From: Lepidodermella squamata
Lineage: Eukaryota > Animalia > Gastrotricha
DNA length: 64,000 nucleotides
Direction of reading: 5' to 3'
Assembly (NCBI GenBank): GCA_047495785.1
Contig: JBLDXI010000004.1
Span: forward strand, 930,001 to 994,000
The first letter of the stretch is position 1, and every line of letters begins with the position of its first letter. The translations under genes were made by a program, and so were the position numbers. Shown piece after piece: positions 1,447-56,480 of the stretch. The notes beneath the pieces were generated by a model. It ran no database searches and was not told where the DNA came from. It worked only from the letters and a program-made list of their open reading frames with translations.

Positions 1447-3963
1447 TCAAGGGCTTGGCATAAATCGCTCGCATAGTGCTTGTTCAATAGTCACGCCACA
1501 GCTAACTCCAGCATAGTAATAGACGCTCGGCCATGTGGGAGACACCATCCCAGCACAGTCACCATATTCAGGTGAGCCATGCCACTGATTAGTTTTATAC
1601 TCGTAATCGGAGCCATCATCCCACTTGAGCACGCCGTTTTGCGAGAGCGACCCATGTGATTGCGTCATACTTACCACCCGACAATGCCAACCTAGCCTGC
1701 GCAAATTCGTCGTCTGACCTCATTTGAGCTAACTGACCGCCGTTACTGATGCATGCCTGAATTGAGCCAGTTCTACTGCCGTATTCGTATTCGGTCACGT
1801 TGTACACATACAGCACAAAGTACACTTTGCGCATGCCCTTGCAGGTGGCTTCGTCCGGATAGGCGCCAGCAATAGGAATTCGAACTTCGGTGTTTGCATC
1901 GCAGCCAACTGTGTCCAGCAGGCATCGAACTGACGCGTCACTCTTGTAAACGCAACGGTAATAGGCCTATCCAGTTATAAAGATAGAATAAAACAAGATT
2001 AAAAACTAGCTTCACGTGCAATTTGAATGATGTTATATAGACTACCGTAAATTTTACCGTAAATTACAGTAATATACTGACAATTTGAAAGGAGTATTTT
2101 ATCGGAACCTAATTTACAGGGAGCTGAACCTAATTTGCCACTGAAATCAAGATTGGCCACAATAATTCGAGAAAAATCACCGGTAAAGTCACTGTAAAAT
2201 TCCTAGAAGTAAATACCGTAAATTCCCGAATGCCGAATAGTAGTGCCGCCTGGGCATGTATATTTAGGAATTTACGATATAACGTGAATATGGAAAATCG
2301 CAGAAAGCATGTTCCCCTTTGTGTCTCAAAACTGAGCGAAAGTAACTGATGATCAGTTTAAATGAACGGCAAAATAGCAGCGTTGAATACTACGAAATAC
2401 GGTACCCAGAAATGTTGAAAGAGATAAACTCACAGGAGGCGATATATCTTGGATGCATTTGTCGTGATTCGGCTGGAACGTGCCCGATTCCGAGAACAGC
2501 TTAACCTGTTATAGAAAAACTTTAAATTATGGAGAAAACCGGGCCTTTGAGCGGTACCTGAGCTTGATCTTGGGGACAAGCTGCGTAGCAAGACGTTCGG
2601 TTGGATAAATCCTTGCACGAAACGGCATTCTGTTCAAACAAGCGTAATAACTGTTAAGATGCAAAAAGCTATTTGAGATCTCACTCCTAGCAGACAAGAT
2701 GCGCGGTTGATGTAGACTTTGCTGGAATATTGCTGAGTTTCATTGTTAGCAAGGCAGCCAGAGCTTTGAGGTCGGCAGTTGGTGAACTTGCTTGTTGTCG
2801 AATCGAAACATCGGATATGCGGCTTCTCGCTGATCGTAACAGTGACTGTGATTAAAAAACAGTGTGATTTTTTATTTTTTCGCTGTGAAATTCTTCAGCG
2901 ATAATTAACAGGTGTCCCAATAATTGATTACATTGTGCACTGCATGAATGAAAATTCCCGGAACTTTCTTTCAATCATTGATAAATTTGTTCTGACGGAA
3001 ATACCTGAATTAACTAACTATTTAATTTGTCGAAAAATTAAGGTCCCTTATTCCATATTTAGATTGAGAATTTATCTCAGCCATTTCAAATAACCGATTT
3101 TAATATTTGACTCACCCGTGCTGTTTATGCACGACGTTAAATCTGAGTAAATCGTCGATTCAGTGATCTAGAAGAGGAATAATTGAGTAAAATTCAATTG
3201 AGTTTTTGAAACAAAATAGGAAAATTCAACAAAACTAACCCAGTTTTCGGGGCAAGTAAACGGATCGGGAACACACGTTTTGATGACGTTGTTCGAGGTG
3301 CAGCGCCGGAATTTCGACGATTTCTACGATGAATGAACAAAAACTAATCATGAGCACTGTCAACAGAGGTTTGGAAGTTCTTACATCGAAAACAGCTCGT
3401 TGCTTCTCACATTCGTTGAGGTTGTATTTTAAACTCAACGTCGCATTTTGATCGTTGAACCAGAACGTCTGAAATACAAAAGTCATATTAGATCAACGAT
3501 GTGAAAAAGCAGAAACATAAGATCAGAGACTTCACAAAATGAAATGAGGCGTACATTCATATCACCGAGGTTGTTACAGCCGACGTTTCCAGGTACGCAA
3601 AACGGGGTGAGGGCCTCATATTTGTAGCACATTCGGGCATTCTATAGACAAACGAGGGCATTATCAAAAATAATCTGAAGAGTAGAACGAACCCCAGTGT
3701 TGCAGACGCCAGTCGTTCGAAAAATGCCACCCCACTAGTTGGTGAAAAATTCAAAAATCATCAGGTTACTGCACGCGTGCAAGTAAATCCTTGCAAACCT
3801 GGTATTCGGTGAGTGGATTACAGCCATCGGCGGCTGGTACGCAGTTGGTGAATCGGTTGCTGAACTGCGAGAAGCAGCGGACCCAGTTCAATTCTTTACC
3901 TGAAGCCGGGTCACTTGACGCCAGCAATAGGCTTAGAAGGAGAGCACAGTGAACCGAAACCAT
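1447..3963 (-). pseudogene. Cys-triplet/C-type-lectin family copy 2; 10 exons, frameshift inside the CTLD
   Basis: Exons 3963-3799, 3734-3693, 3641-3555, 3468-3385, 3323-3240, 3167-3116, 2845-2685, 2629-2558, 2505-2434, 1966-1447, all GT-AG and in phase. In the last exon WVAL and QNGVLKWDDGS...ALCERF are in different frames (small deletion near 1645 relative to paralogues). An assembly indel is not excluded. Confidence 0.8.
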
Positions 3964-5571: not shown

Positions 5572-7903
5572 TTAGAATGACTCGCATAAAGCGTATAGAA
5601 ATGCGGCACCACAATTAGCTATTACATAGCGAGAGCTGCCAGACATTGGCGTTATAAAGGCGCAGCCATCAGTAACTTGGCCTGTCCATTGATTAACGAC
5701 AAATGCGAAATTGGAGCCATCATCCCACTTGAATACGCCATTCGCTCGAGTCAAGGCGATCCAGGCCGGCGCATCAAGCTGAGGCGAATTTGATACTATC
5801 TGCGCTGCCGCCAGTTCCGTATCTGACCTGATCGTGGCCAAGCTACCACCCTGATTGGCGCATGCCGCTGCTGCGGTACCTTTAGAGGCCGGTTGAGTAA
5901 AATGCACCGAGAAGTAAGTCTTGACCACAGACGTACAGCTGGGTTTGTCCGGATAGGTGGCATTAGCTGGAATTCGAAGCTGGCTAGCCGCATCGCAGCC
6001 AGTTGTACTCGCTACACATCGAACTGTGCCGTCGCTGTTGTCAACACAACGGAAATAGGCCGACTGCAAACAAAAACAGCATGATAAAACAGCATGATAA
6101 AAATAAAACCGATGTCAAGATTCAAATTAACAATAGAGAATAGAGCAAACCCTCTTTTTCTTGAGACGCGATTTCGATATTCCAGTGCTTAAAACCCTCT
6201 TTGACCGGCAATAACACCGGTGTTACAGTTTGCAAAGAAAATTGCAGCTAGATGAATTCAAGGCCAAAATTAATGCCCTTTCACGGAAATGAGGCTCATC
6301 AGCAACAAAAACAAAACAGGAAACAAGACAAATTTGCCTGCTAAATGCTGAAGTTTCGAGGAGATATTATTGTTTCTTTTTTTCAAACAGTTGCTACGGG
6401 GCGGTTCAATTCTGGAAATTTGATCAAAATGATTCATTTACTAGATTCGTGATTTGATGGCAAAAAAGTCTGGATTGTTGAGAACATGGTCTTCAAAGTT
6501 GCAAAGAATTTGAAACTCAAAATGTAGCGGCACATACCATAGTTTTAAAGGTTTGAATGTGAACTCACCACTGGGGTTATGTCCGTGATACATTTTCCGT
6601 GGTTCAACTGGAAGTTGCCCAAGTCTGAGAACAGCTTAACCTGTTGAAGAAAAACAGTTGATACCGGAAAATCAGAGGTTTTGGCTGAGCGTTACCTGAG
6701 TTTGATCTTGGGGACAAATGGCGTAGCACGATGTTCGATTAGATGAATCCTTGCACGAAACAGCATTCTGTTGAAAAGAGATTAACTGCATCAATTGCTA
6801 AAGCAGAAAGGAAAACTTACTCCGAGCAGGCAAGCTGCACGGTTGATGTAGACCTTGGTCGAGTATTGTTGATTTTCGTTGCTAGCGAAGCAGCCCGAGC
6901 TTTGCGGTCGGCAGTCGTTGAACTTTTTGGTCGTAGAATCAAAGCACCGAATGTGTGGCTTTTCGCTGACTGGAACTGTGACTGAGATGACAACGGAAAA
7001 TTCAGTAGTACTCAATTTTTTCAGGGGGAAAATTATTCAAAATTTGGTTGTTAGTTATTGACAAAAATTGAGGCCAGTAAATCACGAACCTGACCCATTG
7101 GTACATGAAGCAAGAGTTGAATACAGAGTCGATCCAGTGGCCTAGAAAAAACAAGAATCAGCGTCAAACAGGAACACATCCAACGTTCCAAATCGCTAAC
7201 CCAGTTGTTTGGGCAGGAGTATGGGTCCGGAACACAGGTCGTAATGACGTTGCTCGAGGTGCAGCGCCTGAATTTTGAAGTCTGGAATAATAGAAACATA
7301 AAGCATAATAATTAATATGGCCAAGTTTCTTGAATTTCTCACCTCGAATGCAGCTTTCTGTTTCTCGCATTCGTTGAGGTTGAATTTCAAACTCAACGTC
7401 GGCCTCTGATCGTCGAACCAGAACGTCTGAGGCATAAATTATACCATTATACTCAATTCCAAATAATTGGTTGACGGGGCTTACATTCATATCACCAGGA
7501 TTGTTGCAACCAACGTTACCGGGTACACAAAACGGGGTAAGGGCGGCGTATTTGTAGCACATCCTGGCATTCTATAGAAAAAACAAGACAAAATTAAATA
7601 AAGATTCTGCAGAAAATTTAACAGACCCCGGTGTTGCAACTGCCAGTTGTTCGTAAGCTTGAGCCAATCTATCGATAGAGAAATATTTGTATTAATCAGC
7701 CGTTCGATAATCTTTTTTTTTGGAAAAAGAACCTGATAATCGGCGAGTGGATCACAGCCATCGGCGGCTGGGACACAGTTGGTGAATCGGTTGCTGAACT
7801 GCGAGAAGCACCGAACCCAGTTCAACGGCTGCGCGCCCAATGCCACGTCGCTTGACGCCAGAATTACGACGGCTAGTAACAGAGCACAGTGATTCAAAGC
7901 CAT
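5572..7903 (-). CDS. Cys-triplet/C-type-lectin family copy 3; intact secreted protein of ~437 aa (signal peptide, 6 four-Cys modules, CTLD)
   Basis: Exons 7903-7733, 7668-7627, 7571-7485, 7426-7343, 7281-7201, 7141-7090, 6981-6821, 6767-6696, 6640-6569, 6063-5572 join into one open frame. CTLD motifs: CxxxGGxLATIRS, WIAL, FKWDDGS, terminal LCE. Confidence 0.9.
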
Positions 7904-12400: not shown

Positions 12401-15400
12401 CACTCTAAGGCCGGGAGCGTGTATACTCAAACTACGACTTCTCACCTCGAATTCGCATACTTCCCTATTTTTGCCGGACAAATGGTTAGGCCCACTTTCA
12501 GATGACCACCTAAAGACCCGAATTCCGAAAACCGCAAACTCGCCGCGTTGAGTGCGTAACACAGGTGAGCGAGCAAATCACGGGCACGCATGCCTATTGT
12601 GTAAACTCAGGCAAATTGTGACCAAATGACACGGGGGTCGCGCGGGCGGCCTGTTTTGTATCATCGGTTCATTCACCCTGTGTTAATTCAAATTGTCACT
12701 TGAGTTTACTCATGCACTCTGTCAATAAATGTTTAAAATAAATTTTTTACATTATTTTAAGTACAACTTTTTATGAGTATGATGAGAAATTAAGACACTC
12801 GCAGCTTTTACGTTGTTACGTTATACCTACCATGCAAAATGGGAAATAAAAGAACCGCCTCGAGTAGAAACATGAACATTGTCGATATTCATTTACCGAC
12901 ATTTCCGTCATCCTAACTTTTCGTAATTCATGGATGCGGCTGAAAAGCAGCAAGTCTACAGCATGGTTGAATCCGATGAGATCGGTTCAACCGATTCCGT
13001 GCTCTCGTCATCGGACGATGATCTTGACCGGCCACTGGCTGACTTCAAGGTGCCTGGACAGGCCAAATGGCAAATGCTGAATGAAGATCGCCAACTGCAC
13101 ATCGAAAAATGCGACCTGAAAAGTCGCCCCACCGACGACTTTGTAACACGAGTCGAGGCGCTAAGCAAAGGTAGGTAGTTAGCTTTATACTAATCCGAAT
13201 TATATGTTCTTTTCTATAGGTATCTGATATTGCGTCGCTTTGGAAAGACGAATGGCAAGCCGAGTGGTCGGCTGATCCTCAGGCAAGCACCAGCAAGCAG
13301 GCATCGCACGATGAAGATACCAACGGGGAGAGCGGCAGCAAGAAAACGGCCAGCGATACCGCCAAGAAGGCCGAGCCGAGCGCCGACAGTGGTGATGACG
13401 AAACCGGCGAAGTTACAAGTGGCACGACCGTCAAGAAGCGCAGCACCACGACCGCCACCAAGAATACCGCCAGCAAGGCCGCCCAATGTGACTACGACGG
13501 CAGCGACGAAGATGATGAACTAAAACCGAAGAATTCTAAGAAAACTGTAAAACGCGATCGAGCTGGCGGTTCGAAGCGCGCTGAGAAGCGGAAACCGAAA
13601 ACCGACGAGCGTTACTCGAAGGTTCTGCCGATTTTTCTTCTGATGTTTCCCGTGATATCGATGTTGGTTACTGAAACCAGCCGGTACGCGGCGCAGATGT
13701 ACGCTAAGAACCCCGGAATCGGCTAATTTGTTGCAACAAATGTTCACGAAGTCTTCTGTTTTTTGGCGTGTGCTATAGCCATGGGTATCGTCAATTTACC
13801 GTCGGCCAGGCTGTATTGGGAAAGTTCCGATTCAATGCTGTACCAGCCGTACTTCGCCAAGATCATGTCGCGCGATCGTTTTAAGCAACTAGTGCGTTTT
13901 CTGCGACGACGCCGCCCTACCTCGAAACGACCCTGAATATGACAAGATCCACAAGGTTCGGGCGTTTCTCGACCGTTTGCGAAACGCTTGGCTCGCGAAC
14001 TTTGAAATCGGTGCTCAGGTTCGTACAATAAGCTTTTTGTTATTTTTTTACTGAAATTGTCTATGCTCATCAGGTTGTCGTCGACGAGCAAATGGCCGCA
14101 TTCAAAGGTCGAACAACCCTCAAACAGTATATGCCGGCTAAGCCCGTCAAACGCGGGCTCAAGTTTTTCGCTCTGGTAATCTGGTAATTATTTTTCAGGC
14201 GATATTCTAATATTTTTTTGCAGTTGGCACCGACGATTCGGAAGCGGGATTGGCCGAGCGTATCGTATGGCGGTTGGCGACGGCGATTGCTGGCTACTGG
14301 CGCGTCCTCTACATGGACAATTGGTTCACGTCTTTACCGCTGTTAAATCACCTATTGGGCAACAAAATCCATTCGGCTGGGACTGTTCGAGCAAACCGGG
14401 CTGGTCTCGACTTGGCTGTTCCGATGAAGAAAACCTCAAAGACCGAACGTGGCGCAATGCGATTCAAATTTTTCGGCAATGTCTTTTTCGCTTCATGGCT
14501 CGACAACCGCGTCGTTAATTACCTGTCGACTTGCCACACTGGATCTGCGACCGCAAATATCGAAAGACGAGGCAAGGATGGTAAGAAAATTGAAGTGCCT
14601 TGCTCACCGGTGTCGGTCGACTACCAGCAGTTCATGCGCGGCATTGACGTCGCTGATCGTCCTCGCGAGAGCTAAGACAATTGCACCCTGCCCAGCAAGA
14701 AGTGGCACCGGCCAGTCGTCTTCTACGGCTTGTAAACCGCGATAAACAACGCCTTCATTGCCTACAAGCAACTTGCGAATTGTCCCAACTACCCGTCTCT
14801 GCTGTTTCGTCGCCGTCTTATCGACGAGCTGCTTGCCGCAGGAATGTCGCGTCAGCGAGCAGTGGCTCGGAGGCACAAAATTCACGAAAACATCGACGCA
14901 ACAACCGTGACTGACGCTTGGAAAGATGGCGGACGTTGGCCTCGGCACATCGGCAATTACCCCGGCACTCAGCGCACTCGTATGCGCCAGTGTGCGCTAT
15001 GTGCGGCCACGAAGCCTCTTGGCAGCCGAATTCCGGCATCAGCGTACGAATGCCAGGTCTGCGACGTTGGGCTGTGCATCGATCCTTGCTTTCAGCAATT
15101 CAGACCTCACGCCGGCTGATTTTTCACCATTTTTATCATGAATAAATGAACCCATTTTGAGTAAATACATGTTGATCAGAGTAATTTTCAGCGCGTATTG
15201 TGTTGACTCAAGTGCGAGTTTTTACAAATTATGAAGTGTAAGTAAACTCAAGTGGTTACTTAGTTATAATCGGTTTTGAGTGTCGTAAAAATCGCCAATC
15301 CAAAACATCACCCCCTAAACTGAGTTCATACAAGTTGCAGCTTAGTTAACTCAAAATGAGTGATTTTTCCCCAATGAGTATACTCAAATTGTCAAAACTA

Positions 15401-22789: not shown

Positions 22790-23849
22790 TTGATGAATCT
22801 GGAAAAATGTCTGGAAAACAGATTTCGATTCCTACCTATAACTATTGAAATTGCAAGATTGTGCCTCAACGAGTTATCCCGTACGAAGCCAACTACAGCA
22901 GCCGATGGTGTACCGGAATGTGTGCTTAAAGCAACTGCCGGGATATTAGCCCCTCACGTCGGTGTAATTTTCAACAAAATACTAGCAGAAAATCGAATTC
23001 CCGAAATTTGGAAAGTCGCCACCGTAAAGCCGCTCTTCAAAGACGGGGACAAGGAACTGATTAGCAATTACCAGCCTATATCCATTCTTTCCCCGCTTTT
23101 CGGAACCTGCGAACGCTGTCTAGCCATCCAAATTAAGCAATGCCTCCACGAATCGAAGTTTCTCTCCTCAGCTCAATTCGGATTCCGCCGCTATCATTCA
23201 ACCGACACATGCCTCGCAAAAATGTCTAACGACTGGCATCAAGCTATCAATAATCAATAAGGGTTTAACTGTAGCAGTGCTTAGCAAACAGCAGCAAACA
23301 GAAGCTGCAGCAAACAGGGTGCGATCTTCGATCCCCGAGCTCCCAGGGATGGAAAAAATTTATTTGCCAAAATGACGAGTCTTTTCGGCTAGTAACCGAG
23401 CGAAGCGAGAAAATTTTGGAGATTTTCCACTAAAACACGCCCCAGAACCTTCCAAAATTAACAAAACAGTGGGATAAATTCTTATTTTGTTGTCTGGCCC
23501 GGCCGAGCTGGGAGGATGATCCCCCACATCCCCCTGAAAGTCGCACACTGGCAGCAAAACCCCGCCGGAATAATTTCATCTCTAAGAAGCGCAGGATTCG
23601 ACGAAAACTCACTGGACCTTTATGTCCAGCTACATCTTAGGGCGAACACAAATAACTAAAATCAACAGTCGATCATCTTCACCAGCTGATATCAACTATG
23701 GCGTACCGCAAGGCTCCGTACTCGGACCTCTCCTCTTTACAATTTACGTGAACGAAATCGCGGTGATATCCTCTAGTTCGAATATAGTTCAATATGCCGA
23801 CGATATCACCATCTACTTCGCAGCTTGCTTTTCGCTGAATATTTTGTAG
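22790..23849 (+). mobile_element. Non-LTR retrotransposon reverse transcriptase fragment (CR1/L2/Jockey-like), interrupted at ~23261-23615
   Basis: WKVATVKPLFK, NYQPISILS, QFGFRRYHST, GVPQGSVLGPLLFTIYVN, QYADD motifs. Confidence 0.88.
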
Positions 23850-26800: not shown

Positions 26801-28689
26801 GTTCTCCTGCCGCTCTCTGAGTAAGATGATATGAGGATGAGTATTGATGAGCCCGATGTAACAGAGATGATGTTAGAATGTGAGATTGAAGATGAGTACA
26901 TAGGTGGTATAGACGTCTTCCTATCGCTAGTCCCTAGCAACAGCGTTACTTTGAGCTCCGCCGTCTTCCCGCGTCGTCGCGGGTTTTTAAATTCAAGGTT
27001 GCGCGCGCGCAAAACTTTTTTTATTTTTCGTCAAAATAAAATGTTTTCAATATTATTTATTTCGAAACAATTTTTAATAGCGAAGATTATCTCGATTTTC
27101 TTTCAGTCTGGATAATTATATAGATATAGCCAGGCTTCGAGCGCCCAGGGATTTTATGTAAATCCGGAAACCGGAAACCAATTCATGCTTTATTCATTCC
27201 ATGATTTTACATTGCAAAAACCTTTCATAATTTCCGGTATTTTATTTATACCTTCTACTCATGACTCTTCTAAATCAAAACAGCTCATCTTTGCATTTCA
27301 CCGCACGTGCTCTTCCCCTTATGTTGCATCTCATGAATCGTTTTGAAAAGCTCGGAAATGTGAAATGCCACTAAAATGACTCGCATAAAGCGTATGGAAA
27401 ATGAGCACTACAATCCGATATTGCATAGCGAGAGTTGCCATAAATTAGCTCCATAACGGCGCAGCCATTATTAGTAACTTGGCCTATCCATTGATTAAGG
27501 ACAAATGCGAAATTGGAACCATCATCCCACTTGAATACGCCATTCACTCGAGTCAAGGCGATCCAGGCCGGCGCATCAAGCTGAGGCGAATTTGATACTA
27601 TCTGCGCTGCCGCCAGTTCCGTATCTGACCTGATCGTGGCCAAGCTACCACCCTGATTGACGCATGCCGTTGCTGCGGTACTTTTAGAGGCCGGTTGAGT
27701 GAAATGCACAGAGAAGTAAGTTTTGACCACAGACATACAGCTGGTCTTATGCCGGAATTCGTTGCTGCGTTACCGCATCGCAGCCTGTTGTACTTGTCAC
27801 ACATAGAACTGTACCGTCGCTGTTGTCAACGCAACGGAAATAGGCCGACTGCAAACAAAAAGGGCATGATCAAAATAAAACCGAAATTACGCGTCAAGAT
27901 TCAGTTTAACAATAGAGAATAGAGCAAACCCTCTTTTTCTTGAGACGCGATTTCGATATTCCAGTGCTTACTGCTCTTCGACCGGCAGTAACACCGGTGT
28001 TACAGCTTACAAAGAAAATTGCAGCTAGATGAATTCAAGGATAAAATTGATGCCCTTTCACGGAAATTTGAGGTCGAAACGCTCGATTTCGGACAATTGA
28101 AGTCAACTTTATGGCGATGAAGTTGAGGCCGGTCGACTTTATCCGCTGTAGTACATGTTTGCGAGACAAAGCCAACTTTAGTAAAATAAAATTGACGTTA
28201 TGTTCGAAAATCCTGCTGGTCATAGAATCGACTTTTTTCCTGGCGATAAAGTCGACATTATATAAAGTTATATAGATATAAAGTTAACTTTATCGACAAA
28301 GACAGCTTCGAAAAAAACCCCAACAAAGGAAGAGTGAAAAATAAATGGAATTATTTTGACTGGTTCGGTATTTGTTTGGTAAAAAACTGGAAAATGTTTT
28401 AAAATTCAATTATTTAGGCAGCATTATTACTAGCGATGGCAAAATTGATGAGGAACTAAATTATAGGATTTCCAAGTGTTTTCGGAGCCATAAATAAATT
28501 CATGTGCAATAAAAATCAGGTGTCTATAGCTACTAAGTTGAAAGTTCTGACCTGCGTAATAATACCTACCATCATTTACGCTTGCGAATCCTGGAACATA
28601 TCGGTAGGTTGGTATGCATCTATAGAACGACCCCGAACTAGATGGATCCATGGAGTGCATAGAAGTTTGATTATGCACTGACTAAGGAA

Positions 28690-55419: not shown

Positions 55420-56480
55420 TTAATCCATTATTGGTTCGCTCGCGATGCAGGCTGGTAGATAGTTTAGCACATGGCGATCGCAATTAGCCACAAGTTCAGG
55501 TGTAATAACTGCACGAAGATGCCTTTCAATGATTTCACTCAAAAATTCACGACGGGTATTTTCTAGAACAGCGCCAACAACACGCGCAGCCTCGATAAGC
55601 TGGTAGTATTCCAGCCTAGGCATAGCTAGTTCGTTTTTTATCGCAGCTTTTACAGCTGAAAAAACGTTTTCGATAGGGTTCAAAAACGGCGAATATGGTG
55701 GGAGAAATTTGAACTGATGCAGCTCCCGCAGCGGAAAATCGGCGTCAGGATAATGGCTTCTCAAATTGTCCAGAATAATGACAGCTTCGTTTTGATGGCC
55801 AATTCGCTCGCTAGTTTGCGTGATAAACGTTGCGAATCGTTCACAAGTCATGCCCGTTTCAGAAATTTCGTAATAGACCAGCCCTCTAACAGGTGAAACT
55901 ACCACCACCACAGACCGGGTGTTTACCGGGAGAAGCTGTCGGCAGTAAAACATAGGCTCGCTGTCCTTTCGGCGCTCTGCCACGGCCGCGACGAGTCCAA
56001 AGCGAAACGCCAAATTCGTCTTGGTAGTAGTGAATTTGGCGATTGCGGATATCAGAGAACCAGAGCGCATATGCGGCTCGTTCCAAAATAACATCAGCCC
56101 GGTTGCGAGCAGCGGGATACGGGTGAAGACGTTTCATCGTAATTAGGGCGCCATCCAATTTTCTGTGGATCGTCGTGATCGAAAATTCTGCATTAAAATT
56201 TTGCAGCAGTCTCATCCTGAGATCCTCCAACGTCAGCTGGGAGTTTTCTTCGATTGCCCCAACTAAATGTTCAGTAAACTGAGCTTCCCAACGGCGGGGA
56301 GCACCTCCTCGATGCTCAGCTTCAATGCGAGCATCGGTGCGATATGTGTTGATGATATTATACATGGTTGTTAGAAATTCCGAGAACCTTTGCAGCCGCA
56401 TGAAAATCTTCGCCATTTTCGAAGGCAGTTACCAACCTTTCCCTGTCAATATTTGATGTCTTTTTGTACGCTCGCGGCAT
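55420..56480 (-). pseudogene. IS630/Tc1-like DDE transposase with two frameshifts
   Basis: MPRAYKKTS..AAKVLGIS (HTH-like), QLTLEDL..SITTIHRKL, QDEFG, ILDNLRSH, FLPPYSPFLNPIENVFS. Confidence 0.9.

Follow-up and report, generated by a model that had tools for sequence, protein, structure and literature searches.

Mosaic ancestry of a frameshifted C-type-lectin-like exon and the rate profile of its gene family in Lepidodermella squamata

The locus and its lectin-like genes

The stretch of DNA analysed in this study, referred to below as the window, is G000:C4:930001-994000, which covers 64,000 nt of the genome of Lepidodermella squamata, an animal genome with introns. The genome assembly comprises 151 contigs and 121.2 Mb; the published Lepidodermella squamata assembly is a HiFi assembly from multiple-displacement-amplified DNA, with 122 Mb in 157 contigs (PMC11660948).

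The genes under study share a type of last exon in which one Cys-triplet module is followed by a C-type lectin-like domain (CTLD). This Cys-triplet and CTLD exon occurs at least 150 times in the genome, and a first look gave 514 candidates. Copy 5 is a patchwork member of this very large tandem family of secreted Cys-repeat/C-type-lectin-like genes, and was compared mainly with copy 3. The stretch of copy 3 that is homologous to 27371-27490 of copy 5 is 5572-5688 of the window. The features referred to in the text, in window coordinates, are as follows.

27371..27848, minus strand: last exon of copy 5, 478 nt, a Cys-triplet module and then the CTLD, now in different frames
27371..27490, minus strand: patch of copy 5, the last 39 codons and stop of the CTLD (W, 38 residues and stop), 18.8% different in DNA from copy 3
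27500..27709, minus strand: homogenised (gene-converted) CTLD core of copy 5 (maximum chi-square; 100% bootstrap; 12 shared derived sites)
27747..27751, minus strand: junction of a 17-nt deletion in copy 5 relative to four intact relatives, with TAA
27752..27848, minus strand: Cys-triplet exon start of copy 5, not homogenised, dS 0.45 and dN 0.09 to copy 3, grouping with C4:1218k (98%)
27849..28070, minus strand: last ~220 nt of the intron preceding this exon, copy-3-lineage-like, ~10% different
27128..27361, minus strand: 3'UTR of copy 5, 90% identical to C4:1217567-1217799 and 77% to copy 3
5572..6066, minus strand: last exon of copy 3, the comparison partner, intact, 164 codons and stop, with its patch at 5572-5685

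A stretch of 17 nt separating the Cys-triplet module from the CTLD is deleted from the last exon of copy 5 (between 27751 and 27750) and is present in four intact relatives, namely copy 3, C64:172k, C4:1264k and C4:1218k, whose exons have 163-164 codons. An in-frame TAA at 27749-27747 follows directly after the deletion, upstream of the CTLD; the exon reads S-A-Y-F-R-C ... R-I-P-A-stop and the CTLD continues in another frame, which is still open over 123 codons. The upstream exons of the gene appear to be intact in a motif scan. As read from the DNA, copy 5 is probably a pseudogene, or at best a truncation without the CTLD, and splicing to an alternative acceptor within the 33 nt that precede this frame of the CTLD might still rescue a CTLD-containing product. 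An earlier note on this exon had seen its divergence but overlooked the frameshifting deletion. Owing to the frameshift and the premature stop, copy 5 is therefore a poor witness for selection on binding.

Several other elements were observed around these genes. A CTLD exon at window positions 1447-1834 (minus strand) extends over two overlapping ORFs in different frames and is probably frameshifted too. Between the lectin genes lie ORFs that by eye resemble a piggyBac-type transposase (14250-14675, plus strand), a reverse transcriptase (22790-23849, plus strand) and a Tc1/mariner-type transposase (55420-56416, minus strand), all putative fragments. Within C4, and also between C4 and C64, there are seven pairs of last exons with identical DNA (L009=L010, L012=L013, L018=L019, L029=L030, L049=L050, L090=L091 and L095=L096), which reflect either recent segmental or inverted duplication or the retention of haplotigs.

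The domain is a CTLD by both sequence and predicted structure. Protein analyses were confined to the last exon, and residues are numbered along the copy 3 last-exon product, in which the patch spans residues 128-164. Pfam PF00059 (Lectin_C) gives 33.6 bits for copy 3 and 39.3 bits for copy 5 (cut-off 22.6), and a profile of 71 family members matches DEC-205, PLA2R, mannose receptor, CD69 and NKG2D chains; snaclec chains are among both the sequence and the fold matches of the family. An AlphaFold2 model built on the 71 members (pLDDT 93.2) shows the order beta1, alpha1, alpha2, beta2, beta2', beta3, beta4, beta5, and Foldseek matched NKG2D, MBP-C, CD23 and CD69 at probability 1.0. The two helices, beta strands 1-5 and two conserved disulfide pairs of the CTLD fold are present, and C69, C135, C152, C161, W102 and L105 are invariant or nearly so across the 71 copies. 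The patch was mapped onto the model by secondary structure, as follows.

Residues 128-133: shortened long loop
Residues 134-141: beta3, followed by a two-residue turn
Residues 144-150: beta4
Residues 151-155: beta4-beta5 loop
Residues 156-163: beta5

In classical CTLDs, the long-loop/beta3-beta4 face is the ligand-binding face. The variable segment had been placed on this face from the sequence, and the model agrees, with the remnant of the long loop and beta3 to beta5 falling in the patch. The patches of copies 3 and 5 both lack EPN, QPD and WND, the tripeptides by which a classical Ca2+-dependent CRD is recognized. By motif alignment with collectins, the positions that are presumably equivalent to EPN/QPD and WND read G-Q-V-T and Y-V-I or Y-A-I, and the long loop is presumably ~8-9 residues shorter than in collectins.

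Divergence and ancestry along copy 5

The differences between copies 5 and 3 are distributed very unevenly over the CTLD. In the codon alignment (NG86), the 84 CTLD codons before the patch contain 4 synonymous and 6 non-synonymous differences (dS 0.070, dN 0.032, omega 0.46), with six residues differing, whereas the patch contains 3.5 synonymous and 17.5 non-synonymous differences (dS 0.152, dN 0.239, omega 1.58). In its last 38 codons, 15 amino acids are replaced, copy 5 has one additional codon and only two codon differences are purely synonymous; the clustering of replacements in the patch is far above chance (Fisher p = 4e-6). These values reproduce the hand count in the earlier note, which described a tail with a one-codon indel and about two purely synonymous changes that was much more different than the upstream part. 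Its description of the adjoining intron as nearly identical was overstated: identity is 89% over ~216 aligned bases, indels are present, and the homology between the two introns ends ~220 nt upstream of the exon.

The DNA divergence between copy 5 and copy 3 amounts to 10.6% in the last ~220 nt of the intron, 15.5% in the exon start, 4.3% in the CTLD core, 18.8% in the patch and 19.4% in the 3'UTR. The patch is as divergent as the exon start and UTR taken together (odds ratio 1.04, p 0.89), and it is the core that is the outlier when compared with the same flanks (p 1.7e-7). Synonymous sites differ at 4/60 in the core, against 8/24 in the exon start (p 0.004) and 40/206 sites in the UTR (p 0.018). 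Because the silent sites are homogenised too, the low divergence of the core reflects more than purifying selection. A two-breakpoint maximum chi-square analysis delimits a low-divergence tract at 27709-27500, with 3/210 differences compared with 68/664 outside it (permutation p ~0.01). The 3' end of the tract is located 10 nt before the patch, and within it copy 5 departs from every one of the three copy 3 lineage members at only 3/210 sites (1.4%).

The nearest outgroups of the clade of copy 3 and copy 5 are L017 (G000:C4:1213185-1213589) and L073 (G000:C4:901480-901900), both of which are decayed, one with a 7-nt duplication, a 23-nt insertion and an 8-nt deletion, and the other with 16-nt and 31-nt deletions. 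Segment trees were rooted with the two decayed outgroup copies, C4:1213k and C4:901k. Copy 5 is nested within the copy 3 lineage in the core tree (100% bootstrap), is sister to C4:1218k in the trees of the exon start and the 3'UTR (98% and 100% bootstrap, respectively), and is basal to both the copy 3 lineage and C4:1218k in the patch tree (84% bootstrap). For the UTR, the AU test rejected the placement of copy 5 in the copy 3 lineage (p 0.03). For the patch, where the copy 3 lineage offers only a single fixed derived site, the AU test rejected no topology (alternatives p 0.16). With the two outgroup copies as reference, copy 5 and the copy 3 lineage have 12 derived sites in common in the core and none in the patch, and at 4-5 patch sites copy 5 has the outgroup base where the other copies are derived. 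The ancestry switches again right at the stop codon: in a genome-wide DNA search, the 3'UTR of copy 5 found a 90% match elsewhere, at C4:1218k. The same search with the patch found nothing closer than copy 3 (81%), so that a donor-like match was obtained for the UTR only.

A run of identity, homogenised silent sites and a tree that is incongruent with those of the flanks are the marks of interlocus gene conversion, and copy 5 has all three. The contrast along the CTLD probably arises mainly from a conversion tract that homogenised the core of this mosaic, frameshifted copy, the patch representing its native background divergence. A short-tract interlocus gene conversion with the copy 3 lineage as donor (closest C4:1264k) would recently have overwritten ~210-260 nt of the CTLD core, wiping out silent and replacement differences there, and part of the upstream intron would have been converted separately. 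The C-terminal 38 codons would lie outside the tract and would have retained an older, 'native' divergence of ~19%, the level of the unconverted Cys-triplet start and of the 3'UTR, the latter of which itself matches a third paralogue. The mosaic, the homogenised core, the frameshift and the rate profile of the family are seen directly in the data; from them we infer the direction and order of the conversion events, the native background of the patch and the origin of the deletion at the 5' edge of the conversion. That a tract homogenising the upstream part might fully explain the contrast had been foreseen in the earlier note; the tract at 27500-27709 largely explains it, with a patch no more divergent than the unconverted flanks.

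The 17-nt deletion (27747-27751) and the 5' edge of the homogenised tract (27709) are ~40 nt apart. It may be speculated that the conversion event itself created this lesion.

Replacement rates in the C-terminal block

The earlier note had read the excess of replacements as positive selection on binding specificity. In such an episodic scenario, the patch is as young as the core, and a functional copy 5 fixed ~15 replacements on the ligand face and was later frameshifted. If the patch shares the recent ancestry of the core, its ~17 replacements against 2-3 silent changes would indeed need an adaptive burst. Against copy 3, C64:172k and C4:1264k, the pairwise patch dN/dS of copy 5 is 1.58, 2.49 and 1.87, respectively, and all of the derived patch changes that are clearly private to copy 5 are non-synonymous (9/9, from codons read by eye, with a neutral chance of ~0.1). 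The silent divergence of the patch is low (3.5/25.5 sites, and 2/22 of the codons for identical residues) and fits the young core and the old flanks equally well. However, the pairwise value of 1.58 is not significantly greater than 1 (one-sided Fisher p 0.29-0.38), and the maximum-likelihood omega (GY94) for the five-copy clade is 0.67 in the core and 0.95 in the patch, the latter showing no departure from 1 (LRT 2dlnL = 0.02, p 0.89). When the patch dN of 0.24 is set over the divergence of the unconverted flanks (UTR ~0.22, silent sites of the exon start 0.45), omega is 0.5-1.1. Furthermore, a breakpoint between core and UTR is required in any case, the patch of copy 5 and that of the copy 3 lineage have no derived site in common, several sites are shared with the outgroups, the total divergence of the patch equals that of the untranslated flanks, and copy 5 is frameshifted today. 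Positive selection in this pair is thus not borne out, since no test on the pair or the clade is significant and the maximum-likelihood omega of the patch in the clade is indistinguishable from 1, and we regard an episode of selection in copy 5 as a minor possibility.

The behaviour of the block in the rest of the family was characterized using 71 distinct intact last exons, from which 23 phylogenetically independent close pairs (dS <0.45) were taken; only close pairs were counted, and the alignment of distant members is uncertain in the variable loops. NG86 and Poisson counting serve here as approximations of codon site models of the codeml or HyPhy type. The summed pN/pS over the 23 pairs is 0.35 in the Cys-triplet module, 0.63 in the CTLD core and 0.89 in the patch region, and the window value of pN/pS reaches 1.2-2 in three stretches of the patch, namely the long-loop remnant, the beta3-beta4 loop and the beta4-beta5 loop. 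A greater age of the patch throughout the family was considered on account of its NG86 pS (0.18 versus 0.14 in the core) and rejected, as the excess vanishes at identical-residue codons, where silent divergence is 0.089 in the core and 0.082 in the patch, and is treated here as a multiple-hit artefact. The equal silent divergence at these codons means that the family-wide excess consists of replacements and that the patch is not generally older. Conversion that spares the patch is therefore no general rule of the family and is seen for copy 5 only.

A Poisson analogue of the M1a/M2a comparison prefers a model in which ~10% of sites have an omega of 1.5-1.8 (p 1.5e-6 with a global silent rate and 0.02 with a regional one). 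Per-site Poisson tests gave eight nominal sites, six of them in the patch, none of which survived FDR correction. The 15 positions at which copies 3 and 5 differ, chosen blind to the other genes, were then taken as test positions in 22 independent pairs without the focal members. Their omega is 1.43 (1.04-1.81, bootstrap over pairs). It rises to 1.52 (1.03-2.01) when the silent baseline is taken outside the block, and falls to 1.18 (0.94-1.39) when the block itself supplies that baseline. The 22 positions at which copies 3 and 5 agree have an omega of 0.80. The value of 1.43 and a mixture class near 1.8 are also in keeping with episodic selection on copy 5. The C-terminal block is the fast-evolving face of the family, with moderate evidence for omega >1 at loop positions. 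The part of the earlier claim that concerns diversification of this face is moderately supported, by approximate counts, at the level of the family, and the part that concerns copies 5 and 3 is not. Residues 128, 139, 141-142, 148, 151, 155 and 157 form a testable list of positions that resemble a recognition surface.

Under the preferred account, in which conversion homogenised the core of copy 5, the old changes in the patch are mostly replacements because the block is the least constrained and fastest-evolving surface of the fold throughout the family.

One further pair may be mentioned in its own right. L021 (G000:C64:159314-159805) and L046 (G000:C4:1321948-1322469) differ by 5 synonymous and 35 non-synonymous changes (dS 0.04, dN 0.09, omega ~2.2), with replacements in both core and patch, and provide the strongest single-pair hint of adaptive change seen in the family.

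Other origins of the patch and known lectin-like systems

The patch may instead have been imported as a conversion tract of ~90-120 nt from a paralogue that is missing in the assembly, either through loss, through incomplete assembly or because it lies on the other haplotype. Several donors have contributed to the mosaic of copy 5, its patch lies between two ancestry switches, and some of the patch bases match the decayed outgroup copies. However, copy 3, at 81%, is the best that the genome-wide DNA search offers for the patch, and at sites where C4:1218k differs the patch agrees mostly with the copy 3 lineage (13 versus 3 sites), which makes an import improbable. Plain decay, in which the replacements were gathered neutrally once the frameshift had left the CTLD untranslated, has the frameshift, the premature stop and a patch omega of ~1 on its side. 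It should, however, affect core and patch alike, whereas copy-5-specific changes amount to 2.4% in the core, 8-12% in the patch and 6% in the UTR, and the CTLD frame of 123 codons is still open; we consider plain decay very improbable as the sole cause. That the mosaic is an artefact of chimeric assembly of paralogues, for example of amplification chimeras, the formation of which is discussed for the published assembly from multiple-displacement-amplified DNA (PMC11660948), is the least credible of the explanations, since a chimera would equal its sources, whereas each segment of copy 5 is 1.4-10% from its nearest relative with private substitutions, and no chimeric contig was reported in that assembly (PMC11660948).

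Among known systems, the family can be compared with three. In the rodent NK gene complex (Ly49/KLR), tandem CTLD receptors are subject to interlocus gene conversion, have fast-evolving ligand faces and are frequently pseudogenes. A published inventory of the rat NKC counts 67 group V CTL genes (PMC2910302). The gastrotrich genes resemble this complex in their many tandem paralogues of one CTLD fold, their mosaics, their conserved framework and their variable loops around beta3-beta4; unlike the rodent receptors, they encode a secreted family with lineage-specific Cys-triplet repeats, and they are known here from the genes alone.

Accelerated replacement rates are a feature of snaclecs (snake-venom C-type lectin-like proteins) and of immune lectin expansions in invertebrates. 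The present family has the same fold, no canonical Ca2+/sugar motif and a replacement rate in the loops that is near or above the silent rate. It differs in having an omega of only ~0.9 for the block as a whole, and of 1.2-1.5 at its hot positions, as estimated by approximate counting.

In the targets of diversity-generating retroelements (DGRs), such as the Mtd-type variable proteins, hypervariability is found in the C-terminal ~40 codons of a CTL fold. The variable block described here consists likewise of the C-terminal strands and loops of the C-type lectin fold, and the two are strikingly alike; however, the host of copy 5 is an animal with introns. DGR-like mutagenesis was considered and rejected: the 23 base changes start from A in 6 cases, C in 6, G in 6 and T in 5, with no adenine bias, and no template repeat was found genome-wide.

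The case of copy 5 carries a caution, in that a contrast between framework and binding loops of paralogues can stem from conversion over a short tract of a dead copy; in such a case a hand count of replacements overstates selection. For the family as a whole, it can tentatively be suggested that the C-terminal block of its at least 150 members is a diversifying recognition surface, with ~10% of sites at an omega of 1.5-1.8, and that conversion reshuffles and homogenises the scaffold; the genes would then form a germline-encoded repertoire of binding specificities, and the patch of copy 5 would be the relic of one of these. The behaviour is that familiar from tandem lectin-like receptors, here in a new, lineage-specific family. 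The family is a large, undescribed, lectin-like one from a little-studied phylum, and its rate profile, although unsurprising for a C-type lectin expansion, is useful for work on innate recognition or surface coats in small spiralians.
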